Of a DNA stretch of 64,000 bases, positions 16,986-59,535 are shown piece after piece. The notes under the pieces were generated by a model. The model did no database searches. It was not told the DNA's origin and saw nothing but the letters and a program-made list of their open reading frames with translations. The number at the start of each line of letters is the position of its first letter. Positions within the stretch are counted from its first letter, which is position 1. Source of the stretch: Octopus sinensis (lineage: Eukaryota); contig NW_021832974.1 in the NCBI RefSeq assembly GCF_006345805.1, forward strand, positions 1,363-65,362, written 5' to 3'. A program made the translations under genes and the position numbers.

Positions 16986-17023
16986 TAATAATAATAATCT
17001 GTCTTACTTAGGATGGTCTACAG

Positions 17024-20869: not shown

Positions 20870-20906
20870 TATTAGTGTTAGTACTACATCCGAGATATAG
20901 TCTTGA

Positions 20907-25258: not shown

Positions 25259-25357
25259 TTATTTACAAGCATTGTGTTGAACAACTCCTAATTAGTCAAT
25301 GAAACATGTCGATTGATCGTCGGGCGCGCAAGTTATAGATTGAATTGCCGATAATTG

Positions 25358-26345
25358 ATGTTAGCAATGAGCGTTACTGGCAAACTGACTGTCGCTGCCA
25401 TGATCCTGGCCGCCCTGTCCATCCTCACTGCGGGCATATTCTTCATGTTGGACAAGTCGAGTGTGGCCACTGGTTGTCCCTTCTTGTCATGTGGCAGGAC
25501 TGTACTCCAACCTCACCTCCGACCTCCAATTCGCCTACCAGACTCCACTCACGCCCATTTCGTGGATAAACAACCAGTGGAACGCAGTGATAATCTGGCT
25601 GGCCTTCTTCCTCATCTACGGCCTCTCCACCACATTCCGGCGAATCCACGACACGACGGACTTGAAGGAGCGGGCGAGTTATTTGTACAAGCACCCCTGC
25701 AGAGGAGTGGTTCCCTATGGGGTGTACTCCTCCATTGCAGTCGTGTGTGCTCTGTCCGTGGTATATCTCTTCCTCTGGGACATGCTCTATTTCCGTGCCT
25801 CCGCCGCACTCACACTCCTCTCCGCAGTCCTCGCCCACATTGCCTATTTCCACATGGCCTCCCACACATTCCACGTCCAGACCGTCCTCTTCCACTGTGC
25901 CAAGGCACTCGATGTGTGGCTCCTCAGGATTCTCGGCCTCAACGGGCTTGCCTTGCTGTCCGCCTGGCTGACTTTTCTCGCACTCCTCAACCTGTCGGTG
26001 GCCATGGTGTATGGAGGAGGCTCCCTCTCCCCCCACTCCGCCGGGGAGGTGTGCGGCGGCATTTATTTGGCTTGCATTGTGGCCACTCTCCTGGCCGACC
26101 TGTTCTTCCTTGAAAAGTACACTCGCTATGCCCTCGTCCACTACATTTCCCACATGGTCTCCGGGTGTGGACTCGTTCTCTTCAGACCACATGTCTACGG
26201 GGACTTTCCACTCAGCACTCAACTCGGCATCGCCATCCTCGGGGTCGCCGGCACTGCCTTCGTCGTCAAACTCGCCTTTGCGGTGGTCAGACATTTCTCA
26301 CACCCTCTCCCCACTCCCAACAAACACTTTCTCGACATGTTCTAA
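25358..26345 (+). CDS. Multi-pass membrane protein, possibly TspO-like superfamily
   Basis: A 25-nt intron joins ORFs 25355 and 25461; several hydrophobic segments; 'SD..FAYQTPLTPISWI..W..IIW' resembles the S..Y.T..TPA.W.F.IW motif. Confidence 0.65.
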
Positions 26346-26559
26346 CATTTGATTTGTTGTGCCCTTCCCTTCTATAATAGTATAGTACGTGCAACAACTG
26401 TGTTTATACTACTGTCTTATCGGCTTATCGGGTAAGAGGATTGTCTCCTCTGTCGAAATAGTACATTGCACTGATAGAGGACAATCAATTGGATGACGAA
26501 GTTTGATCGACCTACACGCATATTCTGATTGCTCATAAGCGGAGTGGGACAGCCACACA

Positions 26560-27071
26560 ATGAGTGGAGGACAAATATGTAGAATTTGCCACATGGAGGA
26601 CAGTGGGCTGATTCGTGTGTGTGAGTGCAAGGGGTCATTGGGGTACGTCCACTCGGGTTGCCTGGAGGCGTGGGTGAGCATATCGATGAAGAAGGAGTGC
26701 GAGTTGTGCAAATACCAATTCAAAGTAAAGAAGGGAAGCATTCCCCTGCACAGAGTAATAAGCACTCCTAGTTGTAGTGGCAGTGTCTCGAACTGAGTCG
26801 GAATGAGCAGAAGCGTATCGCGGCATCGGTGACCATCCACGTGATCGGACTCATTTCCCTTTGTTGGGCGGAAGCAATAATAATCCAGTACTTTGTGGAG
26901 GAGAGGGGCAAAGTGGACGCGTCGTGGACATTTTATGCCAAAATAACCCTGGGAGTGATGGGGATCGTGGGGGGACTCATCTTTTGCGGGATCGAGTGTT
27001 CCAAATACTGGGGACTACTCAAGCGCCTCCACCAACGGAATCGAAGGGTGACGGTCGAGGAGTATGTGTAA
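26560..27071 (+). CDS. MARCH-family RING-CH E3 ubiquitin ligase (MARCH1/8-like)
   Basis: CRICH...CECKGSLGYVHSGCLEAW...CELCKYQF; a 23-nt intron leads to two TM segments and a KRL..RNRRVTVEEY tail. Confidence 0.92.
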
Positions 27072-27153
27072 CAATAATATTATTTAATCGATGTGAACGG
27101 CGCTGTTATCAATATATAATTCGAGTTCCGCTCATTGCACTATTCATTCCTCT

Positions 27154-27879
27154 ATGAAGAGGGGCAAGACAGGACGTCTATTCACCGACATAACCAACGT
27201 GGACATCCCCAGTTCCCCCTCAGTCAAGTCGGCAGTCCGCATTCCCAGGCGGAAGAGAGGGGATCGGATGGCCACAGTGATCAGGGGTTCCCCTCCCAAA
27301 CTATCCATCAACCACAATTTCCTTACGCAGAGGACACTGCTGGACTACTTTGGTGTGCACAAGAACGTGGTGTCCCACTCTGTCGACAAACAACAGTCAT
27401 TCTGTCGGAGTGTGGTGGACAAGTTGATTGGGGACTCGGGGAAGGGCGTGTTGAATGGAGGATACGACGTCTATGGCCGACTCAAGACACTTTCCACGCA
27501 CACCATGGCAGGACTGGCCTCCATTCACAATCACATGGACTGCCATATCTCCATTTTCGACTGTCGGTCAATGCCCGAGTTTGTGGGCGGCCACATCATT
27601 AATGCTATCCATGTCACTGACTCTACCTCACTCCTCTCCCTCTTCGAACATTTCCAGACCCTCCACTCCTCCTCTCCCCGCAGATTCTATCTTTTTGTAT
27701 TCTACTGCGAATACTCCTCTCTTCGGGCACCCGTCCTCGCTAGGAAGTTCCTGGCCCTATCCCAGGGTCACTATGTCTTCCTCGACAACGTGTATTTGCT
27801 TGATGGGGGATACAAACTCTTTTATGAATACTACAAAGGTCTCTGCGACCCTCCCCGCTACGTCACCAACACTTCCTGA
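27154..27879 (+). CDS. CDC25: CDC25-type dual-specificity phosphatase (rhodanese fold)
   Basis: IFDCR..EFVGGHI.NA, FYCEYSSLRAP (CX5R), VYLLDGGYK.FY...CDP..Y. Confidence 0.85.
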   Translation: MKRGKTGRLFTDITNVDIPSSPSVKSAVRIPRRKRGDRMATVIRGSPPKLSINHNFLTQRTLLDYFGVHKNVVSHSVDKQQSFCRSVVDKLIGDSGKGVLNGGYDVYGRLKTLSTHTMAGLASIHNHMDCHISIFDCRSMPEFVGGHIINAIHVTDSTSLLSLFEHFQTLHSSSPRRFYLFVFYCEYSSLRAPVLARKFLALSQGHYVFLDNVYLLDGGYKLFYEYYKGLCDPPRYVTNTS

Positions 27880-28940
27880 TTACGTGACTTACCACATTTT
27901 TAATATTCTATTAGTCTTGTTTCCGCTATCGAATTGCCCATTATGCGGATTGCTTTACTCATAAACTGATCGATATTTGATCAATATTATGTTCATTAAG
28001 GTCGACTATAATCCTTCTAATGTGATTAATACTGCGGGTTGCCGCTCTGTTCCCCAATGACTACACGAAGGACTAAGAATATTCAAGTCACGTTGAAGAG
28101 TCTCATGTGTGAGAGGACTGTCTAAGTGTGTGATTGATTGGCCAATTAACAGAGAATGGGCACGTCGATGAACAATTAAATCAGCAGGGGAACTCAGCAA
28201 CCGCCCTAGCAATGCACATAACAAAGACCTGCCATAACAGGTTATTATCATCACTGTCTCATTCATCAGAAACGTGTGCAGCCTCTATTCTGCCTTTAGT
28301 TTGCAAGGATTGTAAATAACTTGCGCGTGTTTTTGTGGTTACGGCCGTCTTTTATCACTAGATTGAAGGATACCTCATCAATTGCTAGATACGTTTTCTT
28401 CAGAGTAAATGAATGCATGTACGCAGATATCCTCTCGATGCATTCGCAGAACGAGTCACTTTCATGTTCACTAGGAATTTTGTTTCAATAATGTGTTGCC
28501 GCATTAAAGCTGTCTCACAAGATTTTTTTGCATTGTTCAAAGCTGTAATCAATGATGTTGCGATTTTACACATTCTTTACGTCTCAATAAATTTTTGAGT
28601 TTGTTTTTAATTACATATTCTTTCAAAACTTCGGGAATCGTTGGCAAGCCCTCGACTCAACTCCTCACTAACATTAATATCAAATATTTTCCAAAAAAAA
28701 TTATCGCAAGAAGACAAACTGACTTTTTCAGCGAATCTGTGTTGCTGTGCTTTGCGGAAAATGTCATTCAATATGCAGCGGGGTGTTGTTGAGCTGCCCC
28801 ATCGGCTCTCGGCTATCCTTTCAGCCACTTACCCTAGCTAGCATCTAACTTTGCTCCTTTTATCATTTTAACAATGTAAATTTAAAGGCCAAATGTTTTG
28901 TCCCGAAATTACAAATTATTTAATCCGTACTGATTAACAG

Positions 28941-31933: not shown

Positions 31934-32374
31934 GAGTTGTCTGAGCAAACAAAGCTACTTCCTGGGGTACCCTGAACCCCATAGTCAGTGGAATTATTAT
32001 GACTCGAATTATTATGAGTGGAATTATCGATAATATTAGTGTTAGTACTACATCCGAGATATAGTCTTGACTAGACTTTTAATATTGCCTCCACCCGCCT
32101 CACGACTGCGCTGTCTCGCCTCGATTTGGTCCCTGAGTGTGATGATGTCGTCGGGAATGGTGTGGAGGAGGAAGGGGGTGTGAGGGCGTGGGATGTGAGG
32201 GGGGGAAGTGGGTGTCTCGAGGGGGACTAGAGAGTGAGTCAGTTAATCAACCAAAGTTGGTGACATGTTCGACGCACTCACTCGAAATAGTCAATTTCCT
32301 GTCAAAGAAGTACTGATAGGCACACTCGTCCACCACCAGCAGACTCACACTCCCTTCCCTCCCTTTTATCAGCT
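31934..32374 (+). repeat. Third, internally deleted partial copy of the TALE 3' end / PDZ 3' end
   Basis: Matches 20580-20602 joined directly to 20805-21210. Confidence 0.92.
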
Positions 32375-32403: not shown

Positions 32404-32688
32404 AATATCCGAACTAGGATGTCAAATATCCGAACTGAGATGTCAGACGTCATTATTGTGGTTTCTAATATCCGAACTGAGATGTCAAAGGTCATTACTG
32501 TGGTTTCTAATATCCGAACTGAGATGTCAAAGGTCATTACTGCGGTTTCTAATATCCGAACTGAGATGTCAAAGGTCATTACTGCGGTTTCTAATATCCG
32601 AACCGAGATGTCAAACGTCATTATTGTGTTTTCTAATATCCGAACCGAGATGTCAAACGTCATTATTGTGTTTTCTAATATCCGAACA
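32404..32688 (+). repeat. 42-bp tandem array, left TIR (~6.5 units)
   Basis: Unit AATATCCGAACTGAGATGTCAAAGGTCATTACTGTGGTTTCT starting at 32425, 32467, 32509, 32551, 32593, 32635. Confidence 0.95.
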
Positions 32689-32719
32689 TGAGTGATTTAT
32701 TAATCAATCTACTAAGTAA

Positions 32720-33450
32720 AGTCAACAAACTAATAAATTCTCCCAGCGAGACGGAGGGAACAGCTGTTGCCACGCATGACAGCCAGCAGGATCCTCTGAA
32801 TGAGGAAAGTAAATTCCCTAGGGTCCTTGGACCGCGAAGAACAAAGATGTCCCAGTTTCTTTAGGAAGTGAGGGTCCCGGAGCCAAAGACGCCGGAAGTC
32901 TCGACAACGATTGGCCAAAACCAAAAGTCATCCATCAAAGACTGATATTTCCGGCACTTCGAAAGCTCAGCCTTATTAGCACGAGACCCAGCAAGAGAGG
33001 CCGATTCGTTGATGAAAGACTTTGAGAAGGTATCCACACAAGTGGAATCCCAGACCAAAGGTCTCCCAGAATAAAACGAGAACAACGTAGAGCCGTCCGG
33101 CCTTTTCCCGTCACCACGGTCGAGACCCTTAGGCTCAAGGACAGAAGGGTAGCCGGCCTTTTCGAGTGAGTCGAGAATGATTCTGTTAATCGCCGAATGG
33201 CGTGGAATACGACCCGCGCTTTTCTTGCAGGAGAGGGCATAGATCCGCACCGGCAGGGGTGGGGACTACAGATCGGAAGTCCGAGGCGGAGGCAAATGCC
33301 AAAACGGAGGGCGTCGGAGTCAAGACAGGTGTCCAAATGGGTCGAAGGAAGGCAGTTAAGCCAAGAGCCAGAATGCGGTTGGCGGCTGGCACGGTAACAA
33401 GCCAGTCTGTGCTGGTTCAGGAGAGCCTCCAACGAGTCCGCATGATGCTT
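32720..33450 (-). mobile_element. Nested 3' fragment of a CRE-like non-LTR element (RLE endonuclease)
   Basis: HPCRCG..HALSC...RH..IN.II..L..AG...LEP.GL.R.DGKRPDG..LVWD.T motifs. Confidence 0.85.
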
Positions 33451-33634
33451 ACTAAGAATTTTATCCCATTCACGTTGGAGGGACCTGTCAGAAGGAACTC
33501 AAGCCCTTTTTCCTTCCAAAGCAAAAGTGCAGAATTAATATCAGAGTCCGAACTGTTATGTCAAATGTCCGTTCCTATATTTTCTGCACAATAGTGAAAA
33601 AATAATATTTATTAATGAAATCAATGTTAAGTTG

Positions 33635-34720
33635 CTAAATATTGTCATCGGGGATTAAATCGTTCATCTCGATAATACTTGGAAAATGTTTCTGCACATG
33701 ATTGCATGTTAGTGAGCAAATTCTTGGTGTTATTGCAGAAATACAAGTGTCTATGCAATTTTCTAAAATTCGTAGCCTGGTTTCTTTTTGGGTGAGTCCA
33801 TTTTCTGAAATTAAAAAATCAGTGGTCGCCATTTTTCTTTTTAGTTCACTCTTAAGCACGCTCCAGCATTCCTCTATTGGATTTAATGGCGCACTGTAAG
33901 GTCCCAATCTTATAATTTCAATATCTCGAAATTCTTCTCCAATCATTTTCTCTAACTGTGAATGTACCGGTGCGTTGTCTATCACAATACAAATTTCTGA
34001 ATATTTTTCATTTGTACTTCTGATCATATCTCTGAACCATTGCTGGCAATCCTCTTTTTTAAAATGTCCGCGTCTTCGTTCCCAATATATTAATTTGTTC
34101 TCATTAATGGCTCCAATTATGTGAATATTTTGTCCCTTGTTTGCTGGAGTCTTTAAAATGCATCTTTTCCCTTTTAACGAACGTCCCTTCGAAAATCAAC
34201 ATTAATAAATTATACTTGAGTTCTTCTTAAAAATAAGTTTACATTAGTTTCGTCCATATAAATTATATTTTTGTCTCGACTTTTTCTATTTATTATTTTT
34301 TCGACATATTCTTTCCTTTTCGTCTTGTTTGCTTCTGAATTCATTAAATTGGTTTCAGTTATAACCTTGCCTTTACCAATATAAAAATACTTTTTTAACT
34401 GTATATAATTTTCCATGTAAATATTTAGCAGCTGTCGAATAATGGATAGAAATTCCAGTTTCATTAAGTAGTCTCGCACAAATTTCGCTTAGAGTGATGA
34501 CAGGATTTTCCTCAACATAGTTTATCATTCTCGATATTTCATTGTCTGTGATTTTTGACCATCTGAATCCTCCACGTTTTTTATTAGGTTGTGAAGCATT
34601 TCGTATCCATTTATAAGCTGTATTTCGCTTAATCCATTCGATTCCGATTCCTGCCACAATATGCATCTGCATCTTCATTTTCATAAGCAGATATAATTCT
34701 CATTTTGGCTTCCAAATTTG
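33635..34720 (-). CDS. Tc1/IS630 DD34E transposase with two micro-introns; extreme N-terminus damaged
   Basis: YMDET, DNAPVH, PYSAPLNPIE (34 residues between D and E). Introns 34366-34390 (25 nt) and 34187-34215 (29 nt) join the three ORFs in frame. Confidence 0.85.
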
Positions 34721-34825
34721 TTTTATTATATGTTTTACTAACACGAGAAGAAGTATTCATAGTTTTAGCAAAAGTATTCATTTCGAACGAACAAAAATCC
34801 ATTTATATTTTTTAGATACGTAATT

Positions 34826-35190
34826 TTGACCTTTGACATCTCAGTTCGGATATTAGAAACCACAGTAATGACCTTTGACATCTCAGTTCGGATATTAGAA
34901 ACCACAGTAATGACCTTTGACATCTTAGTTCGGATATTAGAAACCACAGTAATGACCTTTGACATCTCAGTTCGGATATTAGAAACCACAGTAATGACCT
35001 TTGACATCTCAGTTCGGATATTAGAAACCACAGTAATGACCTTTGACATCTCAGTTCGGATATTAGAAACCACAGTAATGACTTTGACATCTCAGTTCGG
35101 ATATTAGAACACCACAGTAATGACCTTTGACATCTCAGTTCGGATATTAGAAACCACAGTAATGACGTTTGACATCTCAGTTCTGATATT
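34826..35190 (-). repeat. 42-bp tandem array, right TIR (~8.5 units)
   Basis: Reverse complement of the left-array unit. Confidence 0.95.
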
Positions 35191-35893: not shown

Positions 35894-36849
35894 TTATATT
35901 TTTGATGTCAGACTGAATTTGGAGTTTTTATCGGATGTCTTATCTCTGTCGTAAATTAAATCCCACCCGAATAAAGAGTACATCTTGAATAGTCTACCAC
36001 TGGATAAGCTATCTATTTGTCTCTCTTCCAAGGACTCGAAAAGATAACAAACAGAATAGAGGACAATTGATATTTCTGGGAGTGCCAAATGTTGTTTCAA
36101 AACTTCTTATCATCTAACTATTCTGACCCAGTTCTAAGACTCCTCGGACTATTTGTAGCAGCTTATTGTTATTTTGTGAATGGGCAAAGGTGACCTGATA
36201 ATTGATATGAGAGGAGTGTGACGGGAGACTATGAGTGAGAAGGGGAATATTTGGAGGACGTGAGAGGAGGGCAACTAAATGTCGGCAGAAGTTGTGTGAG
36301 GACGATGACACACCCATTGAGTGATGACTCGAACACACCCGTGGTTGACACATCCCAACCTCGTTGACAGTGGCAAATGCAGTTGGAATAAAAATACTCG
36401 CCACTGAGTGACCCTTTTCACACTTATTACCCGCGTATGTCAGTCTCACCATCAACGAGGGGTAACACTGGATATCCGGAAGTACACACCACCACTCTCC
36501 TCTTCCCCCCGAGGGCAGAACGTGGGACACACACTCATTGAGGAAAAGGAGAGAGTTCTACATTACTGGAGGGATTTCTATCACACCTTCACAATCCTCA
36601 CATTCCACCCTCTCCACATCCTTTCCCGTATCCACGAGGTCTAGTCACTGTCTGAGAAAATATATTGTACTCGAGAGCGTCCCTGCAGAGTAATATCTCG
36701 ACTCGATTGAGGGTAGTGAACAGAACTGAGTCCCTGCCCTTCAATGACTTCACCACCACTACTTCTTGGCTGTTCCTCTTCATGTGAATCAGAGCACTTT
36801 TAATATCAATCATGTCCATGCTTGGTGTCCGCAAACACATATCCTCCAC
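35894..36849 (-). CDS. Possible unidentified intron-containing gene
   Basis: GC-rich island with consecutive minus-strand ORFs; no recognised motif. Confidence 0.3.
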
Positions 36850-37829
36850 GACCAGTTGGGTGAGTTGGAGGGGATTGACCTCGAGGGAATACTAGTGTTG
36901 ATTGGTAAGGAGTATTTTATTCTCATTATACTTCACCTTTAGTTCATCAAGATTTATTTGATGGCAATGAAATAATACTGGATATGTATTGTACTAACAG
37001 CACAGTTAGAATCATTATTATTCAGCGTTGAATTTCACCTCATTTCTGTGTAATTAGTTTAAGTATTTGTGCATTTTTATTTAGTTCTTACAAATTGGGT
37101 TACTTCAAATTTGATCTCTCTAATCTGACCAACTCTAGCAGAAGTGGCATTGAAGACGCACTGATTATGCCAAGTCCATTATTTAATAATTTGTGATTTA
37201 GGATTTGTGAATATTCATGTTCCGTGACTCATGTTTAATTTATTCATCAATTGATTGCTTCCCCAATAAAAATTGACACACATCAATAAACTGAATTATA
37301 AAACAAACAACTCGCTTTTTTTAACAATATATCTGGTCGCTATAAAGGATTTAGAGAGTGCGTCACAGTGTTTAAATTATGGTCTGGCTGAGTATTCCAT
37401 GTCTTCACCATTTGACTACAACTCTGATTTTTGTGCATTGTGACGTCGTTGGCCAATTGTTCGCTGTTTAAAGGGGAGGGTATTTGAAGTTTAATAAAAA
37501 TATCGAGGGAATTGTTTCGGAAAGTTTAAGGATTACTCAGACATTGTTTCCAGCAGGAGAAGTATCACATTTAAATGAACAAAGACTGACATGACAAAAA
37601 AGAATAGTCGATTATTCAGCAGTTTTCGAGTGCCTGAATGGCAACCAACACATCTTGCGGGAGTAAATTAAATTCCACCAGAAGAGAAAAGAGACCTTCG
37701 ACCACCACTCATTAATTGTAGGAATATATTTAAAATATTGGCCTGTATAATTGATGTGTTAATAAAGGAACTGGACCAATTAATAGAATGGAATCGTCGT
37801 TGATTGGGCAACTAAACAAAATACGATAT

Positions 37830-40177
37830 TATGGGGAGTCCTTGGCACACGAGAAGGACGAAATCAGGAGACTGTTTGCCCAAGTGAGTTATTTGTGGCA
37901 AATTAAATGCACTTGTGCGGTCATGTCGTAGGTCGAACAGGCCACCACCAAAGTGCAAGTCCAGAAATATATTTTGAAGAACAAGAAAATAATGGCAAAG
38001 TGGGGAATGATTTGGTGGAGTTGGTGGGAAACGATCTTTGGAATTGCGCGAAAGTGGAAGGACTGGCCCCCCCGTTTGCAGAACAGGACGTGGACACTTT
38101 CATTTCCTTATTCCTCCACTTGCAAGGCAATGTTGACTACGTTCTCGACTTGGCGAGGAACATTAGTCGGGATGAAAGAACAGCCTTCTGGAGAGTACCC
38201 CTCCTCATCCATTCAGATCTTGGCTACCTCCATTCACGGACATGGGAGTGACCTGCTGTGGGCTGTCAGGTTGTGCGAAAAGGCCTTTAGCGTGGGGATA
38301 TTCGAGGACAGCCCTGCGATGGGGGACGGGAATGACCAATTCGTCACATTTATGGAAATGCTGGGGCTCTGTAGATGAGTGGGTTGACATGCAGGCACTG
38401 AGGACATGACCTGTTTCTACAAAGCAGCACTCGACTCGTTCTTCTGTGCCGTGTCGATGGAGACGTGCCTCTTTCACGACTTTGGTTCATTTCTGCCCCC
38501 CACAAGGACATTCCCCCCACTTCTGAGGTGAGTCACGACTACATTGGCAGCAAAACACAAACTTTGGAGAGAATTGTGAATTGCTTCAATTGCTTGGTGG
38601 GTGACGTGAACGTGGACCTTCTTCCTCCTCCGATTCACAGTTTGATCCGATGCCTGCGTCGTGTGGACAGTCGGAGGCCTCTGTTCTTGCGACTGTGGGG
38701 ACTGTTCCTCAAGCCGACGATGACTCGTCCCCCCCCTCTGTTCCCTCCCCTCCCTGACACCACCAACCTACGAGTAGTCGTGTCCGTGTTGGACGACTTT
38801 GTTGTCTTGTCCTCCTCCCAGCTGCGTTCCAAGTATGGACACATTGGGAATATTGACTTGGTAAGCAGTCCTCCCCATTCCTGAATATGCTCGACCACCT
38901 GGAGGCCCGCCTTGATGGGTGGGCAATGGGGCAGGCCGAGTGTCCCCGCCTATTCGTCATCTGCCAGTCAGACTTGATGCAACTGGTAGTGTGCCTGATT
39001 ATGGCAGATTAGGTGGGTGAGGGATTGTCCACAACATTCCCCCATCCCATTCCCCTCACACACTCCCCACAAATCCACGTCTTCAAACGTGCACAAACAG
39101 AGGAATTAAAGTCGATGGAGCAAGTGAACAGTGAGTGTAGTCCGGATGAATTATTGCTCCATTTCTGTGAGAAGAGACGGGCGGAGAAAGTGCCGAGAGT
39201 GTGTAGTGGGGATGTGTCGAGGAGGGCATTGGAGGTGGGTGTGATTGGGGCGTGGCTGGGAGAAGACAGTCAGCAGATGACAGAACTGTGGGAGACACTC
39301 GCACTACTCCAATCGCCAGAGTATGTTGAGTAACATGTCCCAGTCCTCGCTTGGTTGGGCGACTGGAGGACATTTGCAGAGGATATGAACAGTACGGCAA
39401 GTATTTGTGGGAGACCAAGCAGGAGAGCATAAGAAAGCTGAACAGTCTGCTCAACTCAGTGCGGATGAACGGAATGTATGTGCATGTGAGTAATGACAGA
39501 GAGGACAAACACTGCGACACGAATATAATCACGCTTATCTACCACACCTACTTCACTCGAAAGGCCCATCTCTTCCACGGGTTGTCCCCTGACTTGACAA
39601 TAATCCGATCGAATGTCGACAAGTTCAAAGGACTGACCAGCATGTTGAGGAGTTGAGTGTTCCACTTATCATTCAGGCGACTTGCAGCCACTCGCCGATA
39701 ACCAGGCCGAGAGGATAGTCTTTGGCCATGTCTACAACATGTTCCCTCCCAACACGGACGAGTCCACTCGTCAACACATTAAAAGTCTTCCTCATCACGT
39801 CATCCTCGCTCCCGAGTTGAGGCACTTGGCCCACTGTCCTTGGTTTATGGCTGAGAGGGAGTTATTGCGTATTAATTCGTCCAAAGTAATCATCCCACCC
39901 TACCTAGACCCCCCGAGACAAAATTAAGTGTGTGGTGCAAATGACGCGAGTAATCACTGCCATTCTGGCTACCCACAACACACCCACTTGTGCCGACATG
40001 CTCTTCCCCGCCATTATATACGTCATTTGCAAGGCCAACCCACCACACTTGCTCCACAACTTGCACTTTGTCCGCTCATTCGGAGACCTCACTGGGGAGA
40101 ACAACTACTGCTGGACTCAGTTCTGCATGGCTGTGACCTACATCACAGAGAACTTGACTAATGAAGAGTTGTTTTAA
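37830..40177 (+). CDS. GAPVD1: GAPVD1/GAPex-5/RME-6-like Rab5 GEF (RasGAP-like N-terminus, VPS9 C-terminus); start uncertain
   Basis: EKDEIRRLFAQVEQ resembles the GAPVD1 N-terminus. C-terminal CPWFMAERELLRIN..K.P..K, CADMLFPAIIYVICKANPP..L, GE..YCWTQFCMAV are VPS9 motifs. Many micro-introns. Confidence 0.82.
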
Positions 40178-40183
40178 TAAATG

Positions 40184-41040
40184 TCACATGAAGTAGTCGG
40201 GGAGGTGGGTGTGGTTGGCGGAGAGGGGTGAGTGAGTGAACTGTACATGAGGGAGGGAGTGTGTAGGTGTGTGTCCAACTTCATGAAGGCAGCCATGTTG
40301 CCAGAGCGGTAGGAGTAATTGGGGGCGGAGAAGAGAGTGAGGACACCAATTGTATCCCTGTGAGATGGGGAGAACAGTCATGGCGAGTTGGTGAGCGCGG
40401 GCAATGAAGTGATTGTGGTGGACGAACAGAGTGGTGATGTCGGGACATGCCCCTGGGAGAGGGGAGGGGGAGTCGTCGGGGTCAGAGAATGTAAGTCACC
40501 CTGGAGTGAGTGGAGAGTATACTTCGTGGGGGATGGATTCGGTCGAGAGTGCGAATGTGGTCAATCGAGTCGATGGAGGGAGACAGTGCACGGCAAACAC
40601 TCGGTCGTCGATGACAGGGGGAGGTAGTCGAACACGTCAGTCTCCACACTTGCACGTACTTTTGCGCACACTCGTCGTATAAACCTGCGTTATTTGCCGA
40701 CATTCCCCCGCAGTAGGCTCACCTTCCCCGGGTACCTCCATTCACCACTCACACTACCTTCAGTGCTAACAACAGGCACACTGTCTCCACCGAGTCATGT
40801 CCACGTAGTCACCCAAAAACAGGTACTTTTCCTCACCACTCCTCTCCAACATTTCCAACAAGTCGTACAATGTGCACGTCACCACACACTGTCAGTGGAG
40901 TACTCACCTGTTCCACGTTTAGTTCCCCTGACAATACCTCCTTGCTCTACCACTCACTCACATCACTCACCATGTAACATTCGCACTTCACACACTCCCA
41001 ACACCTCGCACTTCCGCAGTCGGCTCACCCACTTGACACA
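40184..41040 (-). pseudogene. PP2A/PP4-family catalytic subunit copy with many small deletions
   Basis: Collinear fragments KWVSRLRKC, TVCGDVH, YLFLGDYVD, LLRGN, RQITQVY, YDEC, FDYLPLS, LSPSI, SDPDD, ARAHQL, GYNWC, SAPNY and terminal PDYFM, separated by frameshifting deletions. Confidence 0.9.
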
Positions 41041-41158
41041 TCACTTACTTTTTATTATTATTCTTACTTTTTATTAATCACCAAAGCTGAAATAAACAGT
41101 TTGAACCAATTTCATCTGAATGATGCCAACTTTTTGGCCATAAGACTGGGCAGTCTCA

Positions 41159-41900
41159 TTGCGGTGGAAAGTTCTTTTGTCCGATCTGAAGGGACATTCC
41201 GTGAAAGACTCAGAACCACCCACCTACCCCATCAGACTTAGCAGAAATAAACAAAAAATTGCAAAGTGGAGAGAATCTCGACGCACTACAAACAACATGT
41301 CACTGTCCTACGCAGACTACATTATTATTGCTTCTAAACACGCAGACGACATATCAGCTTATTTCAACATCCAGCAACAACTATATTCCGTCGAGAATTG
41401 GCTCATTGAGAACAGGCTACACACTTTATTATCTTCTGATAGAAGACAATCAAATCTACACACGAAGTTATCTCTCTTTGGTTCTGACCTTCCGTTATGC
41501 AAAACCCGACTATCCTCGGACTTACCTTTGATTTAACTACGTCTTTAAAAAGACATGTCTCAAACATTACTGGTACCCAGAAGCTACTCGTCAAACGAAT
41601 TCATAAACAATACATACGACCAGTATTAAGTTACGCTAGTCCACGGTGGCCACCCTGCTTATCTACAAGCTCGACAATGACACTTGAATCAGTACAAAAC
41701 AAGGTCATGCGCACTATATCTGGGTATCTGAAATACTCCAATCGATCACCTACATTGTGAAACATACATTTTACCAATTGATAAACATCTAAATATGAGA
41801 GGAGCACAATTCCTATTTGCATCGCGAAATTCCTATAATCCTTGTTGTGCTCTAAATGTGCTAAACGGAAATGGTCGTTCACTAAAGAATACGCGGCGAC
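41159..41900 (+). mobile_element. Decayed I/Jockey-like LINE RT C-terminal remnant
   Basis: HADDISAYF, PTILGLTFD, IRPVLSYASP.W, LESVQNKVMRTISG. Confidence 0.7.
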
Positions 41901-42196
41901 TCTATATTCCCAGGCCTTGCTAAAATTGATGGTCTGCACAGATGTTCACATCCAATTAAAAACATTCACAATTCAATCTCAACGTAATCTAATGTGAGGT
42001 CGAGGCTACACAACAACACGGAAACGCAAAGGACAAAGAACAAGGAAAACTAAATTAGCTTACGATTAATTAAAAACTATTAAATTGGATAATTCGTAGT
42101 TGGATAATTGAATATAAATATAATCAAGTTGTCAGATATAGTTGAATAGATTGTTTATCGCGCATTCCATGTTTGTAGTATTAATACATTAGTAGA

Positions 42197-45100
42197 ATGG
42201 AAGGAGAAGGTAGAGGAATGTGAAGAGTTTAGAAATCGTGAGTCTATACTCTTACCGATGGGAAGGACAGTTGGCGGTGGTGGTGGCCCGTGAAGGGAAG
42301 GGGGCAGGGACGGACAGTTCGGTGTACCACGTGGGGAGTGGGGAACATGCAGGAATAGTGGTGAAGAAGCCGATAATGGGTGAGGGGAGTGGAGTGAAGA
42401 AGGGGAGGCTGCAAATCCCGATAGTGTGTGAAGTGTCGGACAAGACAAAGACGTGGGCTGTATGGGTGTGAGTGAATGTTGGCAGGAAGTGCGCCGACTG
42501 GAGTTCACTTTCCGGGAGGACTACGGGGAAGAAGCGTGCAAGACGGCAGCTCTGGACTTTCACCACGACCTGCTGCACCCGGACATATTCCAGCGAGGTA
42601 AGTGTGAGTGTGATGGCAGACTATTGCGGATTCATCATCACCATGGTCAAAATACTGCAGCACAGATACCCCGAGATACTGCAAGTGTCCTGCTCATTCC
42701 AAACTCCCTCTGCTGTCCTCAAACACCTCCAAAAGTGTTACCCCAAGAAGGAGTCGGTGGACTCGATGGTGGGGGAGTTGATGGTGGGTCGTGAGGAGGT
42801 GATGGGCTGCCTCGCCTACTTGATTGACCACCAGTTGGTGGAGTGTGTGGGGGAGGAGTACGTCCTGAGGGTGGACTTGGCCCCACTCCTCCAACTGTTG
42901 GAGGACATTCACCCCAGAGGATTGTCCGCCCAAGACATATTCCATCAACTGTCGATGGGAGAGGAGGTGTTGAAGTGTGGGGTGGGGGAGGGGTATATTG
43001 TCGAGAAGGGAGGACAGTACTACATACGCAGATTGGAGGACCAGGAAATACAACTCGTGTTGGAGGCAGTGCAGCAGGCACACCCGAGGGGGATCACTCC
43101 CACTCAAATCATGGACTATTCACACCTCCCGGAGATTGTCGTCCTCTCCTCCCTCCACCTCCTGGAGGAGAAGGGAGATGTCGTCAACAGTGAGGACATG
43201 TACAACCTCGCCCATTCCTTCACTGAGCAGGACTACGAGCTTGTCCGGTCAGCACTGCTGGAGAAGGGGACATACCACCCGGAGACCATCGCCAAGTACT
43301 GTGCATGCTGATTGCAGTGCCACCAACATTCCAGTGACCTCGGTGGCCGCCATCCTGTCGTCGATGGCCATGTGTGGAGACATTGTGTGTTCAGAGGGGA
43401 TATACAGGAGGAGAGCAGTGACGGAGAGGGGGAGGGAGAGAGTGCTGTCCGCCCTTTCATGCAAGAGTGGAGTGTGTCTGAAGGAATTGTGCACGTATGT
43501 GAGTGTGTGAGTGGTAGGGCACTGGAAGAGGGGGAGTTCTACACTCAATTGACAGTGGACAGTCTGGTGGCCGACAACCTGGTAGTCAGGCGGGGGACGG
43601 ACTACTACATGGACAGTCGATGCAGTGACGCGGACATTGCCACAGTCCTCCGAGCATTGGAGAGTGTGTCCCCCCGCGGACTGTCCCCCACCCAGATCGA
43701 CTGCGGACTGGCACAAGTGGTGGTGAATAAGGCACTCGCCCACCTGACTGCCCGGGGGTTTGTCAAGACTTGTGAGGACAAGTACTATTCGCGGAACTTT
43801 GAGGGTGTGGAGTGTGATGAGTGGTAGAGGACTGTCAGGAGATTATCCGTGTTCTCAGGACGTGTGGGGGGGCCACTCTCACTGAAATTGCGGACAAAGT
43901 GGGGATCCAGTCAGAGGTGTTGGTCAAGGACATTCTCCGTCACTTGGAAGGGGAGTCGGTCGAGTTGGTGGGCAAGCTGTACTACTACGGGGGGCAGGAC
44001 CTGAGAAGAGTGCTGTCTTTGCTGGCCGACTGCTACCCGAAGGGAATGTCTGCCACTGAGTTGGGAGTGCCCCTGGACACGTTGGGGCGTCTGAGGGACC
44101 AAGTGTACTGTGAGGACGACGTGTACTACTACCAACCTTGTCTGTCCACGCAGGACTACGAACAAGTGTTGCGAGTGCTGGAGGCCGCCTACCCGAACAG
44201 TGCCACTCTCCTCTCCGTCTGCACGGATACCAAATTGAGTGAGGCACACGTACTGCACATTCTCCACACACTCATCGACCGGCAGCAAGTGGCCCAAGTG
44301 GACACGCACGTCTTCAGGCGGGCATCCTCCATTGCAGGTGCTCTCTCACTATATGTGTAGACAAGTACGTCACGAAGGGAGATGTGCAGGGCGACCCCAC
44401 CATTGCCATCTTCACCGCCCACTACGTCTGCAAGGTGGCCATCGACGTTCTCATGACGGACATCTCCACATACCTCAAGTACAAGTTGGGAGGGGAGTCC
44501 TCCGTCTACACCCTCGGCCGCATTGGCCACCACCGAGTTGTGTCCACCAAGTTCTCCCACGGATACTCACAAGCCTCCGCCATCTCCATCGGCAATGCCA
44601 CCACTCGCCTCCTCGGCACTTTCCCCCACATTCAACACGTCTTCATTCTCGGCTTGGGTGGCGCTGTCACCTCCTCGCATGTCCGCTTGGGCGACGTCGT
44701 CGTCTCACACCCCGCCCACGACAACTCACTCTACTACATGGCCACCAACTTTGCCACTCAACACGACCACTCTGTGTCCTACACTGTCAAACGATGGGCT
44801 TCCCTCAATCCTGTATCCTACTCTCACTATTCCAGACACTCCATCAACTCGCTGCAAGTCTACACACTCCTCACTTTGAGGACTACATCACTCACGGACA
44901 GGCCCTTCTCTCTGATACCTCATACGACTTCCATCGCCCTCCTCCTTTCACCGACCCATTCTACCGACGAACACATCCACTTCCTCGCCCTCGCATTTGT
45001 CTCGGCACTGTCGGGGCAGGTCGATATCTCCACACCGATGACCATTTGAAGGCACAGTTCGTCGAAAAGACGGGCGTGATTGCCTTCGATGACGAATATG

Positions 45101-45258
45101 ACCAAGTCACCGAGTCCATTCACGGCAATTGTGTCGACAGTTTTCTCTTCATTCGCGGAATATCCGACTATGTCGACGGCACTCACAACGAGATGTGGCA
45201 GCCATATGCAGCACTCGCCGCCGCCGCTGTCCTTCGCTACATTCTCGAGAATCTTTAG
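42197..45258 (+). CDS. Protein with ~10 tandem winged-helix-like repeats and a C-terminal PNP/UDP-phosphorylase (MTA/SAH nucleosidase-like) domain
   Basis: 22-23 nt introns join all ORFs in frame. Repeats of type L..L...(H/Y)PRG.S...I......V...L..L...G.V.....Y; C-terminal VFILGLGG, VRLGDVVVS, FD.EYD, FIRGISDY.DG, WQPYAALAAAA. Confidence 0.8.
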
Positions 45259-45796
45259 TCTAATTTATTTAATGTTCTTTCCTTTGTGTCTCACTAACAG
45301 TTTCTCATCATATTTGGCAGACCACTTTGCTTAATTGGTTAATCATTTTCATGCCACATATCCATTAATTATATTGGATTTGGCAGGTTATGATTGATCG
45401 GTAGAGTGCCAACATATCTTATTAATTGATGATCGATAAGATATTATTTAGGCCCCAGATCTACTTTTTTACAAAGATTTAACATCCTTCCTGCAGATTT
45501 TATGGTAGTTTCCTATTCAGAATGAAAATTCATTCAATTATAGCTGTGTAATTTGTTCAGATTTGAAATCATAATGAAAACAAAGTCTACAAAAAATACC
45601 AAAATCGCAATCGTCAATAAAATAGACGTAGTGACAAAATCTCCGTGCTAGTTTATTCCTTAAAATGTATGATCTGCATGGAGCAGTCAATAGTTACTAT
45701 TATAAGCAAGGTCTGCTTCCCTTCCAAAGATAAAGCTTGCATATTTAATGGATGAGGCATACTCCTCTGCCAATTAATCAAACATATATTATAAAG

Positions 45797-46609
45797 TCAC
45801 ATATTGTTTATTTTATCCCTCAAAATGTTCAGTTCATGAGGGGGAATCTGTTTCAACAGCAACAATATTGCAGAGAGCGTGGACGAATACTGGAAATGAC
45901 ACACACACCCATCACCTCCTCACTACTTCTCGTCTCCCTCACGACCGACTCCACGAAAGGCTCGTTCTCGATCACCAACGGGTCAATGTTCGACTGAGCC
46001 CTCAAAACACTGACATGTGACACTACTTTGGTGGGTCTACAGACAGTGCTGTTTCCTCAGTGGCAGTCAAATCATTCAAACACAGTTCAATTTGGTTAAG
46101 CGTGAGGGACTCGGTCGAGTCAGTGGATGGGATGAGTGGTGGGTCGGGAATGACTGCATAGGACAGGCCTGCCGAGTTGGCCAGTGTCTTCTCGATGGGG
46201 GTGATGGCTAGCAATGTGGTGGAGAATTACTTATATCGTCCAGTCGAACCAGGGAAGGGAGATTGCGGATCACAGTGGCCCGATACAGCCTTTCCTCAGC
46301 ACAGGGGTTGCCTTGAGTGAGCAGAGGAATATACCCAGGAGGGACAACTTCTCGAGATTGGGGAGTCCTCGGAGGTGACGAATTTGAGTGAGGTCGGATA
46401 TTGAATTATTGCGGAGGAATATTTCCCTGAGGTTGGGATATGTGGCCAACTGGGCTATACTGCTTATTCTATTACAACTATCAATTGAGGATTAGTAGGC
46501 GTGCCTGAGGGATATCACTCGTAGGTCAGGACTGAGTTGTGTGGGCACTTGCTCGAATCCGTAGCCCCTGCGCCATCAAGTCAATATATAACCAGTAGTT
46601 AACGTGCAT
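45797..46609 (-). CDS. CFAP410: CFAP410/C21orf2-like LRR protein
   Basis: Spliced product VNYWG..ISLSCNRISS..LREIFLRNNSISDL..LRGLPNLEKLSLLGNPC..YRATVIRNLPSLVRLD, plus C-terminal LSAILLLLKQI; includes GC-AG intron 46478-46504. Confidence 0.8.
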
Positions 46610-50464: not shown

Positions 50465-52079
50465 TTAATGTCGACCCAACTCCTTATCAACCTAGGAGGA
50501 TGAGTGAGTGAGGAATACAAATTCACTGAGTTGTTTCATGTCGATAAACTGGAACAGGGTCGACGGAAATAGATTCGAATAACCTGCGCATATCATCGTC
50601 GCCCAATGTTTGAATCTGTCCGAATTCTTGAGAAGATAAACAATTCTGTTCCTCATATCAAAGCCATGCTGCATCTGCATCTGAAAACGGTGGCGAGGGT
50701 CCATTTGGAGAGAATACTGAGCTGAGGAATGAGAAGAAGGACACACCCATATGCCGTGGCATGTCCATTCGGGGAGGGGGACGGTGGTCATAGCTAAACC
50801 GCTGGATGACATCGGGGGGCATCATGCGGGGAGGGGCGACGACAGGGGAGACAGTCTAGAGTAAAGAGGGAGATTACAGTGGTGTCTGGTTTGGGGGCAG
50901 TGGGGGGTGGTCTGTCGGCTCGGTACTTGAAGAAGTCGACGTACAACTTTTTGCCCTTTTTGGCGAACTTGTCAGTTCCGTGGAGTTGAGTGACGGCGTT
51001 GATGGCACTTTGGTGGTCGCGGAAGTTGATGTAGCCGAATCCGCGGTGGACTCCGTTGTCCTTCTCGAACTGGGATGAGTGGAAGAGGGCACCTTGAAGT
51101 TGCGCAACTGGCCGAAAGCAGTGAAAAGGGCGACCAACTGTTCGTCGGGGGTATCGCGGTCAAAGTTCTTGACGTACAAATGGTGGTGGAGGCGGGGTCC
51201 TTTTGGAGACTGCGGAGGTGGAGGTCGCGGACAGTTTGTTGAAGTGTGGAGTGACGCGGAGAGTGAACCCGGCGACCTCTTGGCCGTTAAGTTGTGCGAC
51301 GGCCTAGGGTGGTGAGGAGGACTGACGTTCTGGGCGGAGGCCTCGTGGGTGAAGGCGACGAATGCATAGTGGTCGAACACCTGAATGTGGGAAGGGAGGC
51401 TACCCTCGTGCTCTGGATGTCTCCATAGGGGGAAAAGTGTTGGCGGAGAGTGCTGTCGTCCCACTCCCGGAAGCCCACCACCTTCACATTCAGATTGCGG
51501 TGTCTGTTTTCCCGTTTGGTGAATGGCTGACAACTCCTGGGAGTGAGGAATGAAGGGCACAGTTTGCAGTCCCCGATTCGGTGGTTGTCCATCGTCAGAC
51601 AGGCCAACTTGGCGTCCTTTTCTGCCTCGAACTGGACATAGCCGTACCCCAACGACTCCCCCTCTTTGTTGTGCGTTATCTACCACTCACTCTACACTCT
51701 TACTTTGAACGACACGATCGGCCCGAACAGAGAAAACAGTTCTCCGAACGAACTCGACTCCAAGTACTTCGGCAGTCCTTTCACGAACACGTTTCCCGCA
51801 TTCCAGTCCTCCATTTTACTGTACGGACGTGCCCACATCACTCGGATCGGCATCCCGTTTATTTTGTGGTGGTTGTACCGCCCTATTGCCATGTCCCCCC
51901 GCCTCCGTGCTGTTGTAGATCGCAAATGCGTATTTCGTGTTGTGCTTCTTCTTTGAATACCTCACCTTCACTTCCACAAATCCATCGATCATCTTTAGTC
52001 TACTTTCCAGCTCATTTGATGACACATTTATGTCTATATCCCCTATGTACAACGTGTACGACTGACGAGGCACAGCCAT
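50465..52079 (-). CDS. Four-RRM poly(A)-binding-protein-like protein with a divergent C-terminal domain
   Basis: TLYIGDI, GMPIRVMWA, GNVFVKGL, SLGYGYVQFE, LYVKNFD, GFGYINF; RRM1-2 spacing resembles PABP; micro-introns. Confidence 0.75.
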
Positions 52080-53643
52080 GCTACACACGCCTATTCTATT
52101 TTTTTAAATTATTGCATAATTATATTCTATTTATTTATTACTATTCCCTCTTTCATTCACTATAATTTATATTGTACAAAAAACATACGCTAGGAAAGTC
52201 ACTAGGCTGGCCTATTATTATTTATTATACAGTACAATTGGGCTGCCTCGAGTGTGATTGCATTGCATATGTCATAACTTGAGAAATTATGTCATTTTAG
52301 TCACAATTTTCCTGGAAGCATTTCGCCAATTTTCCTTCCGATATTAAGCTTTGCGGTTTACTCAAATGTGCGATTATCATGACTGCGAAATAGTGTTTAT
52401 CCATCACACTCTGTTGTAGTCTATACATGCAAATCATTATAACATGAGCGTGACAGTAGTGACTAAAGTGTTGGAATATCGATCAAACAAGTATAATTCT
52501 TCGTGGCAATTGGTTTAATTTGTTGGCCCGATCTTTGGTCGGGAAAAAACAATCTTTTCCTTTAAAGGAGCAAAGTCGTTTGTTTGAGGTGCGCTAGCTG
52601 ACAACACGTTTGTGGATTATTTTCTAGAATTTCCTAATTTTTTTATTTATGTTCCAATCAACATTGAGACCGGTGCCTTGTCAGTAGTTTTGCCAATCCA
52701 GATCTTTTGGAGCACAGATCTTTAAGAAAACAAATGGTTGTTCTATAAATTTTATTTTCGTTTCCTGAGGTAATTGTAGATTATCATTTTCTCGAGATAC
52801 GTCAATATTTCTAAATATGGCCAATTCTATACTGTCTATTTTCAAGATTTGGTTTATTGTTCAAACATCGTACACCGTTAGAAAACAATTGTCATTAAAT
52901 GCACTGTTCAAAGAAGACTGTGCATACAAATAAAACTAAGAGAAAAATGAACAATAAATATAAAGAACCTCATTTGAAACAGACTTCGAGGCGGGATAGA
53001 ACGTTTGATAATAAACCTCTCAGGATTTTAGACAATTACGGCTGCAAAAATTAAAAATTGATAATCTTATTTTTTGTAAATTGTTTGAAAGTAAAAAAAT
53101 TGCAACTACTTTTAACTGTACAAATCTTGAACCATAATGGATAATTAAAGAATTTTGAACAAAACAAGAACTCAAATTAGAAATCCTCACGTGCGAAAAA
53201 AATTAATGCACTCGGAATGGAATGCAATTCTTTTTAAAAGTTTTTTTGAAAAAAATGATGAATATGGAAAACTCTTTTTTGTAGTAATTCTTCTAAAAAA
53301 GTTGATTCTTTATTAATAGGGAGGTTTTAAAAATCCTTATGTTACAGAAATTTTAATTCAGAGGATGTCTTTCATGAAAATAAATGCTACTCAAATATCA
53401 AATTACTTTTGTATTAAAAATACAACACCAACTCTTCAACCGCTAGAAAAAAGAAAAATAAAAAGACGACTATCAAATAAGTTGTAAAATTTTATGGATA
53501 CGGAAATCACGATAATTGGCAAGAATGTGCTACCAATAAAGAAATTTTAATTCTAAAGATGGATCTAATTACTTTATTATAATATGTCGCGAACTACGAT
53601 GCCGATCATAAATAATGTTCGTTTTTAATTAAATGTCAAACCA

Positions 53644-53892: not shown

Positions 53893-55264
53893 GCGACATA
53901 ATATATAGTCATACTAAAGCTCCTAACAACATATAGTTAATCAGGTATAGAAATGGACCTATGAATGTAGAAAAGCGTGAATAATCGGACACCACAACAC
54001 AATTGAATTGTTATTAAAAGACAAAATATAAAATGAGCAGACTATCACTTCTTGGACTGAAATGACCAAACACGTCCAACCTTACAAGAATATTCAAAAC
54101 AAATTAGTGGAAGGAACCCCGTGAAATGACACCCATAAGGAGTGCTTGCATCCAAGTCCCCGCATAAGGTGACTTCATCGACGGATGACAGTCTAAAGAA
54201 ATTTGGATTCTTTTCAGATCCTTGAAAACTTTTTATAAAGAACCTTGTAATGAAATAAAGAATTAAGTTAACGGTGAACTATAATCGGAGATGTGAAACT
54301 AAATGCAATCATTCAAAATAAAAGAAGTTGATCAATGGCTACGAAATGTGGGACTACATTTTGTCATATAATTGGTCTCTCTGCCCTATTGCAATTTCCC
54401 CGTAGACACTTTCCTGAACAAACTACATACAAATTCCATTTTATCAGGCAGTTTCCTAACTTCCGACTTGGGCGCAACCAAATTTGATTAATCTAAAAGA
54501 TGAGATGTATCTTAATCACCATTGGATATGCCCCGGTCAATCGATATGCAATTCATGTTAATAAATGGCTCTAAAAACGACCGGTGGGGACGACCTGGCT
54601 CTTTCAGTGAATTTCGGTCTACGTGCTCCGCGGAAACTGGCATTCAATGGGCAGTGCGGCGTAGTTGAGCTGACCGTTTAGCTCTCGAATACTTTTTCAG
54701 CCATCTAACCTTGCGATTATTGTTAATAGCTTTGATGCCTACTCGTCTTGCTTAATTTACTTAGATTTACTTATTCTATGCTTTGACATGTCACTGATAT
54801 GAGTTAATCTTTCCAGTTTCCAAATCAAGTCGAGTCGACACAAACAGAAATAAATAGCAAAAAAAAATAGCAAAATTAAAGACGAGATAAAACGCCCTTT
54901 AGGACACGAAAAAAATATGCTGTTGGACAGCTCGACTGAGCACATCCACCCCGCCTAATGTTCCAAAGTGCAATGGTCGACTAGACAGAGGCACAACCGC
55001 CTAATTGATCACGGCTGAGCACAACCAAGTAAGTGCTACCCATTCTTCGCACGTCTCAATTTAATTAAAGTTTTTATCAAAAATCATGTTTCAGATTTAT
55101 ATGCTTATAATTCTAAAATGTACTTATTCAGCATATTTTAACTAATTAATTAACATAAAGCAATATTAGAAACAATCCAAATTATTATATTCTTGGAAAA
55201 GAGAATTGAAAACTAGGATAATGTATGTTATTTGATGCCTATTAATATCGAGTAGATTTTTTTT

Positions 55265-55620
55265 TCCGAAGGAGGACAGTTTTCATCCTGGGGCTAATTC
55301 TCGTTATCGTTCCCCTGCCCGTGAGGCAACGAGTACTTCTGGCACGACACAGTTGGAAATGGGGATCTCTTACCTTCCGGGCTTAGCGTGGCGTTACGGG
55401 GTCCACCATGTCAGTTGGAAATTCCTTCGGATATGGCAACGCTCAGGAGGCACTTAATGCCTTCCGAAAAAGGACTCTTAGCTTCTCAGACCCTGGTACA
55501 TCGTCGTCTCAGGCCGATCTTGCGGGAAGGATTGAACCTTTCAGAAGGATCTCCCTCGTGGATCGGCGATCACGGGATTAACTATAATTAACTGGCTTGC
55601 CCGTATTGGTCTTTAAATAA
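55265..55620. other. Copy 2 of the GC-rich structured island
   Basis: Matches 16630-16985 with minor differences (a 2-nt indel seen). Confidence 0.3.
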
Positions 55621-55655
55621 TAATAATAATCTGTCTAACTTAGGATGGTCTACAG

Positions 55656-56052
55656 CAGCGGTTCTCAAATGCGGCCCCCAGGATTTTTTTTGCGGCCCGT
55701 CTAGAGTAACTAACTTTTTTAATTTTTTAATAATGTTAAAATTTAATTATTCATTCTTAAGGTTAAAATATCCATAATTGGTGATTTCATTAATCAATTT
55801 GAAGCACGTTTGGGGTACATTTATATAAATTTAATTTTTAGAATTTTAAAGAATTCCTTCCTTTAATGAAAATATTCGTAACTCCATTCAGCGTGGAAAT
55901 TAAGGATGCGCCTGCAAAGTTTTAACATACATGCGAATCAATATTTAGTAAAATGGAAAATATAAAAATATATAAAATATTTTTTGTGCGGCCCGCGAAG
56001 CTAATCTTATTTATCGATTTGGCCCTTGAGCTAAAAAGGTTGAGAACCCCTG
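55656..56052. mobile_element. hAT MITE, copy 2
   Basis: Same TIRs and GTCTACAG TSD as 17024-17422. Confidence 0.92.
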
Positions 56053-59498: not shown

Positions 59499-59535
59499 TA
59501 TTAGTGTTAGTACTACATTCGAGATATAGTCTTGA

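Follow-up and report, generated by a model that had tools for sequence, protein, structure and literature searches.

Decay of pseudogenes through small deletions has been described for deletion-biased genomes, for example those of Drosophila and Caenorhabditis. Unprocessed pseudogenes of this type share with the PP2A-type relic described here a native context, retained introns, many disabling deletions and the lack of retrocopy hallmarks. Ordinary pseudogene decay carries an excess of 1–2 nt indels, whereas the relic has no such excess and its deletions peak at exactly 7 nt; a preference for glycine codons and a high ratio of deletions to apparent substitutions set it further apart. Deletions of 5–14 nt also lie in the range typical of the scars left by polymerase theta or microhomology-mediated end joining (MMEJ). 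The relic overlaps with these scars in deletion size, but four of seven junctions allow 0 or 1 nt of microhomology, and no clear templated inserts were identified. The catalytic subunit of PP2A (PP2Ac) is essential, and PP2A-type catalytic subunits are normally indispensable.

Dicyemids are inhabitants of octopus kidneys. Among animals, introns as short as those found at this locus have been reported only in dicyemids and myxobolid myxozoans (PMC13644364), the median intron of Dicyema sp. being 27 bp (PMC6543705). The genome of Dicyema japonicum has a GC content of 36.7%, 49% repeats and many LINEs (PMC6736024).

Origin of the contig and anatomy of the relic

The relic is located on contig VCDQ01008775.1 (65,362 bp) of assembly GCA_006345805.1, which was deposited and annotated as Octopus sinensis; the window analysed is a stretch of 64,000 nt of this contig. 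The genes in the window are compact, and their introns, of the GT-AG type with one GC-AG, measure 22, 22, 23, 27 and 40 nt. Animal-type genes for ALDH, RhoGEF+C1, PDZ, CDC25-like and VPS9 proteins are present, the overall GC content is in the mid-30s per cent, and many transposon ORFs (reverse transcriptase, integrase, DDE transposase) were found. In its tiny GT-AG introns, GC content, transposon abundance and octopus host, the contig is like dicyemid genes, whereas its G-to-C skew flip is unmentioned for dicyemids in PMC13644364, PMC6543705 and PMC6736024. For the reverse transcriptase of the window, the nearest relatives carry annotations in O. sinensis only and not in other octopuses, and the relatives of the relic show no preference for cephalopods, the top matches anywhere being about 50% identical. 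The introns of 22–40 nt and the compact animal genes indicate a dicyemid contaminant. Judged by introns, GC content, transposons and host, the contig probably derives from a dicyemid co-assembled with the octopus, an assignment drawn from introns mostly below 30 nt, an animal-type gene set and a cephalopod-host assembly. The case also draws attention to parasite contigs whose genes a reference assembly lists as those of an octopus. The 264-aa PDZ protein encoded at 21083–21877 has been entered as an octopus protein in NCBI nr and UniRef.

On the minus strand from 41041 to 40184, tblastn with human PP2Ac and frameshift-aware protein-to-DNA alignment to seven references (subfamilies PP2A, PP4 and PP6/Sit4) revealed a collinear gene for a PP2A-type catalytic subunit (Table 1), in agreement with the original prediction of a collinear PP2A sequence with retained introns and short gaps. 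The portion of the human query that is visible in the PDB alignment agrees with it, and the tblastn matches of this query are spread over all three minus-strand frames. PP2A references outscored those of PP4 and PP6, and the nearest solved structure to the stitched relic is the PP2A catalytic subunit (E=2e-60, as against 1e-31 for PP1). Pfam Metallophos (PF00149) matches the stitched pieces at 4e-16, and every one of the 3018 database relatives of the stitched relic belongs to PF00149. The relic is collinear with human PPP2CA (PDB 2IE4/3P71 chain C) across residues 12–309, and the PP2A hallmarks GDVH, GDYVD, LLRGN, RQITQVY, SPRG, RAHQL, SAPNY.YR.GN and a terminal DYF(L/M) can still be read. 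Unlike PP2Ac, it has no open reading frame, and about 49 core residues are gone, including neighbours of the catalytic and metal sites.

Table 1. Coordinates of the PP2A-type relic, its parts, its 14 core gaps and the convergent neighbour, as positions in the window; a slash within a motif marks the junction
Feature	Position	Strand	Details
Whole relic	40184..41041	-	ATG 41041-41039; stop 40186-40184; ATTAAA 40178-40173 just 3'
N-terminal block KWVSRLRKCEVL, 5' of 40-nt intron		-	~18 nt short relative to PP2A; out of frame with ATG
40-nt GT-AG intron after ..GVCE	40947..40986	-	
Block SKEVLSGELNVEQVSTPLTVCGDVH	40872..40946	-	then 5-nt gap (GQ) 40872/40871
Blocks LYDLLEMLE and RSGEEKYLFLGDYVD	40799..40870	-	in-frame 9-nt gap ~40844; then 7-nt gap (RG + 1 nt)
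22-nt GT-AG intron, ALK/VRY region	40736..40757	-	5-7 nt gone at border
Blocks LLRGN, (S)RQITQVY, YDECAQKY, VQVW, TDVFDYLPL, IDDRVFAVH	40586..40716	-	gaps within: 7 (HE.), 7 (GF), 6 (G.), 7, 7 nt; then 7 (GG + 1) at 40586/40585
Block SPSIDSIDHIRTLDRI, 5-nt gap (QE) 40535/40534, then IPHE	40523..40583	-	
22-nt GT-AG intron (gtatactctccactcactccag) following PHE	40501..40522	-	
Blocks G..DL, TFSDPDD, SPRG, PDITTLFVHHN, HFIARAHQLAM, intron remnant, GYNWC	40343..40500	-	gaps within: about 9+1, 7, 14, 6, at least 5, 14 nt
Intron remnant without GT	40358-40378	-	between HFIARAHQLAM and GYNWC
LTLFSAPNYSYRSGNMAAFMKLD (69 nt, longest intact block), C-rich tail with further frame change, terminal PDYFM	40187..40341	-	
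Core gap 5 nt, GDVH/GQ	40872/40871		possible microhomology 0 nt
Core gap 9 nt	~40844		
Core gap 7 nt, GDYVD/RG.	40799/40798		possible microhomology up to 7 nt, single specific codon choice
Core gap 7 nt, RGN/HE	40702/40701		possible microhomology 0 nt
Core gap 7 nt, QVY/GF	40679/40678		possible microhomology exactly 1 nt
Core gap 6 nt	40656/40655		
Core gap 7 nt	40642/40641		
Core gap 7 nt	40613/40612		
Core gap 7 nt, VH/GG	40586/40585		possible microhomology at most 2 nt
Core gap 5 nt	40535/40534		
Core gap 7 nt	40471-40461		
Core gap 14 nt	40449-40444		
Core gap 6 nt	40412/40411		
Core gap 14 nt, WC/HDRNV	40342/40341		
Junction DRI/QE of the 5-nt core gap 40535/40534			possible microhomology exactly 1 nt
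Junction PLS/A.			possible microhomology up to 6 nt, single specific codon choice
3' exon of convergent VPS9-domain gene, intact	39932..40177	+	Pfam VPS9 7.7e-22, one frame; assembly-quality control

Three complete tiny GT-AG introns are retained, and two extra C-rich intron-like stretches keep their AG end but have lost the GT. The conserved C-terminal tail (DYFL in the family) is also kept, the relic terminating in ...LPDYFM directly before its stop codon. Introns, stop codon and ATTAAA in place, together with the stop of the VPS9 gene 6 nt from that of the relic, indicate a native locus and not a retrocopy. At 40170–40190 the convergent VPS9 gene (+) and relic (-) share a short AT-rich, palindrome-like stretch, which gives AATAAA in one direction and ATTAAA in the opposite one, so that the two transcripts would overlap in antisense.

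The locus is best read as an unprocessed pseudogene, a dead PP2A-type copy that suffered size-restricted DNA deletions in its native context, probably in a dicyemid (probability roughly 0.55). Family homology is combined with disabling lesions, introns and native flanks are kept, and neither a poly(A) tract nor a target-site duplication was found. On this reading, a divergent and redundant PP2A-type paralogue would have lost constraint, and DNA-level deletions would then have built up or come as one burst. The deletion process would have yielded a narrow size class instead of the usual 1–2 nt indels, the candidates being end-joining repair of breaks and a copying process that skips parts of its template. 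As PP2Ac is essential, a second functional gene must exist; none was seen, and the protein collections contain no close relative.

Sizes and junctions of the missing segments

About 17 short segments (at least 17) of 5–14 nt are absent from the relic, with a mode of exactly 7 nt. Fourteen core gaps were common to all seven references, their sizes being those listed in Table 1. Beyond this core set, bases are also missing directly behind the start codon, from the N-terminal helix (about 18 nt), at the edges of two introns, close to GPMCDL (about 9+1 nt) and from the C-terminal tail. Every gap that the original prediction had listed was recovered in the protein-to-DNA alignments. In the alignments with the seven references, only 0–2 leftover bases lie between adjoining retained blocks, and indels of 1–4 nt are missing with one possible exception. 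A hand check showed that G-Q, R-G, H-E, G-F, G-G and H-D-R-N-V are truly missing and not diverged. Where the deletions begin and end, and how many substitutions the relic carries, was deduced from distant homologues.

GDVH, GDYVD, RGN and AVH are kept, but the adjoining G(Q), RG, HE and GG have been lost. The length of at least 11 gaps is not divisible by three, and retained pieces occur in each of the three frames. With essential residues lost and the frame shifted repeatedly, no active phosphatase could be translated from the relic, and the broken motifs and the broken frame place it among pseudogenes rather than phosphatases. The damage to all three metallophosphatase motifs that had been pointed out earlier is real, but it is at chance level: conserved positions make up 24 of 42 in the deleted core versus 111 of 184 in the retained core, which shows no enrichment of conserved residues among those deleted.

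For comparison, background indels were taken from near-identical duplicates, since the window has too few decayed transposon copies. Lengths of 7 or 14 nt account for 9/14 core gaps, as against 2/12 background indels of at least 3 nt (p=0.02). All 14 core gaps are at least 5 nt long, compared with 9 of 43 background indels (p=1e-7), a background in which the 1–2 nt differences may be assembly errors and to which the contig pair VCDQ01008487.1/VCDQ01000570.1, possibly of another organism, contributes. Glycine was preferentially lost, with 14 of the 49 deleted residues versus 8 of the 177 retained ones (p=8e-6), and 12 of 19 invariant glycines have disappeared, about evenly in both gene halves. 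Proline, the reverse-complement codon class, and all other residues show no loss bias. The bias for glycine together with the unaffected proline points to a preference for GG on the sense strand; both the sizes and the glycine bias come from one locus in a probable contaminant contig. Neutral decay predicts neither the 7/14-nt excess nor the missing 1–4 nt indels nor the loss of glycine codons.

The deletion pattern is odd, and if the relic is merely a decayed duplicate, its interest is local. If the sequence is real, it would document a mutational process that is confined to a very narrow range of sizes (7 nt, no 1–4 nt events) and has a sense-strand preference, which would bear on intron and genome shrinkage in dicyemids and on the break-repair pathways that they have retained. 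It is quite unlikely, on the pattern at hand, that dicyemids possess a new route of gene inactivation or DNA deletion which removes heptanucleotide-sized pieces at intervals of about 30–40 nt with a preference for sense-strand GGN, be it a processive strand-specific event at a transcribed locus or a dedicated silencing of redundant copies.

The retained blocks measure 14–69 nt, 35 nt on average (CV 0.40). They are spaced more evenly than a Poisson process allows (p=5e-5), but the significance falls to p=0.04–0.09 with a resolution floor of 12–14 nt, and the evenness is only suggestive of a real regularity. Such spacing would suit a single processive event, in which the locus was recopied once with low fidelity, about 7 nt being skipped in every 30–40 nt, and the damaged copy replaced the original. 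Break-induced or template-switching replication, or conversion by the cDNA of an unspliced transcript made by a jumping reverse transcriptase, are candidates for this event. The narrow sizes with 7 and 14 nt predominant, the fully kept order and orientation of the blocks and the few signs of substitutional decay are in keeping with it. Against it, the evenness of the spacing does not hold up once a realistic resolution floor is set, neither templated insertions nor a poly(A)/target-site signature were found, and both the introns and the native surroundings on the 3' side have survived. Skipping of heptamers is not documented for any known polymerase, and the glycine-codon bias would be left unexplained; a single recopying event is therefore regarded as unlikely.

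The original prediction had proposed intense MMEJ from gaps that seemed to collapse at direct repeats. The microhomology was bounded by enumerating all codon choices at seven junctions whose deleted residues are invariant in the family. At five of the seven junctions the possible overlap was 0, 0, 1, 1 and at most 2 nt, and longer repeats were obtained only with hand-picked codons. The mean across codon choices was about 0.6 nt, which is the chance value, and direct repeats of at least 2 nt at most junctions are not supported; these figures are a bound and not a measurement. Microhomology is thus not obligatory, and the basis given for intense MMEJ is not upheld.

Several other sources of a seven-base signature were considered and rejected. 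No autocorrelation peak at lag 7 indicated a 7-base periodicity that could cause slippage, and a hairpin formed by the G-rich 5' half with the C-rich 3' half gained nothing in folding energy over shuffled sequences (z=+0.47). Tandem repeats of 7 nt could have collapsed only at GDYVD/RG, and nearly so at QVY/GF if the Phe had been replaced; elsewhere this is impossible. By hand check, splice-like GT..AG or IRE1-like CNGNNGN heptamers did not match the constrained deleted segments. Deletions aimed at the locally rare base were also dismissed, the deleted pieces being G-rich in the 3' half and ordinary in the 5' half, with glycine codons common to both.

Retained sequence and the search for an intact copy

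In the retained core, 117 of 184 positions (about 64%) are identical to human PP2Ac, compared with a median of 78% for 72 full-length relatives, which indicates that the copy was divergent already. Among the retained positions that are at least 90% invariant in these 72 family members and human PP2Ac, 87/111 are unchanged. Several of the 24 changed positions lie at gap edges, leaving about 16 apparently real substitutions, mostly conservative ones (V>L, F>L, R>K, W>F, C>S). Many substitutions follow the local base skew (5' half, C>G; 3' half, loss of G), and no stop codon occurs within the retained blocks. The stop-free blocks, the invariant positions kept and the conservative, skew-following changes suggest that the relic has spent little time under neutral substitution despite its approximately 17 deletions.

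An intact paralogue or allele, which the original prediction had proposed to look for, was not found among 5.8 billion proteins: the stitched 245-aa query gave relatives at 48–54% identity, none of them above about 50–55%, and an 87-aa exon query with consensus residues filled in retrieved only generic PP2A relatives at 72–76% from the same 5.8 billion proteins. The best-identity protein match sits in an unrelated compact genome. Two junction-spanning ORFs had no exact record in the protein collections, to which assemblies built from public read sets contribute. The missing intact product weakens both the cryptogene and the artefact readings, although dicyemid data may be absent from these collections.

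Reports exist of developmentally controlled DNA elimination in dicyemids. In the literature searched, with partial coverage for DNA elimination, no report on dicyemid DNA elimination, skew or codon usage was found. Programmed micro-excision, by which the locus would be the somatic form of a gene of the germ line, or a cryptogene restored by insertional RNA editing could account for lesions that are stereotyped in size and limited to one gene. Both had been put forward earlier, and both are very improbable here. No boundary motif common to the junctions was seen by eye, the junction bases differ, and the deletions wreck rather than create a reading frame; likewise, no intact product appeared in the collections named above. 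The relic is a nuclear-type gene with spliceosomal introns, which speaks against a cryptogene, and we know of no mechanism for the insertion of arbitrary heptamers into RNA. The proposed intact form elsewhere found no positive evidence in either protein search.

Neighbouring genes, assembly errors and base composition

The genes around the relic are intact, as had been stated originally. The VPS9 gene covers profile positions 14–101 of 104 in one frame, and the neighbour with a Rhodanese/CDC25-like domain covers positions 8–100 of 102, also in one frame. The RhoGEF DH domain and the RRMs, which lie in islands of the same composition, are intact except for tiny introns.

The errors of the assembly itself are of another kind. 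At 13664–14174, part of the LINE reverse-transcriptase ORF of 8372–8894 recurs in inverted orientation; over 525 nt the two differ by 15 one-base gaps and one mismatch, and 13664–14174 looks like an unpolished stretch of long-read consensus. A direct duplication of 9.9 kb (15484–25361 and 54122–63997, 38.6 kb apart) is 99.4% identical with 24 mismatches and 13 indels, 10 of which are 1–2 nt. On VCDQ01008487.1 and VCDQ01000570.1, a common AT-rich region of 21 kb shows 99.2% identity and 30 indels, 21 of them of 1–2 nt; it represents either uncollapsed haplotypes or a duplication. Multi-base deletions are thus gathered in one locus, unlike the 1-nt indels at 13664, as the original prediction had it.

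These observations bear on an assembly or polishing artefact, in which the real gene would be intact and the consensus would have dropped short segments. Such an artefact is conceivable in an unplaced 65-kb contig of a long-read assembly that is locally unpolished and, if it is a contaminant, may have low coverage, and the loss of a normally indispensable catalytic subunit would favour it. Against this, the demonstrable errors of the contig are 1-nt indels and not losses of 5–14 nt, the VPS9 exon 6 nt away and the genes with the same skew are clean over hundreds of codons, and the lower identity of the retained core marks a copy that was divergent beforehand. No consensus-calling cause is known for 17 multi-base losses within 860 nt. 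As the errors of this assembly are mainly 1-nt indels and the neighbours are intact, an artefact at the relic is rather improbable, and the unprocessed pseudogene is preferred.

Additional features accompany the two duplications. The 9.9-kb duplication reaches the window end and contains the PDZ gene and most of the RhoGEF/C1 gene, and an extra 419-nt piece of it is found at 31956–32374. The 21-kb region on the other two contigs holds a reverse-transcriptase ORF of 360 aa.

The GC-rich islands of the window (20000–28000, 36000–46600 and 50600–52200, also 58000–64000) correspond to genes, each with a plus strand that is rich in G to the left and in C to the right, and the GC skew in these islands reaches +0.67 and -0.64 per 200 nt. 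This skew is symmetric under reverse complement, so whichever strand a gene lies on, its sense strand is G-rich in the 5' part and C-rich in the 3' part. Within the relic, third codon positions show the skew most strongly, with 51% G in the 5' half and 60% C in the 3' half; the tiny introns share it. AT-rich genes, for example ALDH at 584–1699, have no skew flip. No description of a gene-by-gene G-to-C skew flip was found in the literature searched, and one so extreme seems to be undescribed so far.

Further elements were noted elsewhere in the window. The upstream region 41100–42000, taken by eye for a reverse-transcriptase remnant, gave no Pfam match. A long gene on the plus strand at 42200–45260 encodes repeated winged-helix (HTH_69) units, and its C-terminal part is nucleoside-phosphorylase-like by eye, unconfirmed by Pfam. 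A remnant of a DDE_3 (Tc1/mariner-type) transposase at 33635–34027 lies inside an element at 32413–35085 with inverted terminal repeats of about 270 nt, which are composed of tandem units of about 42 nt.
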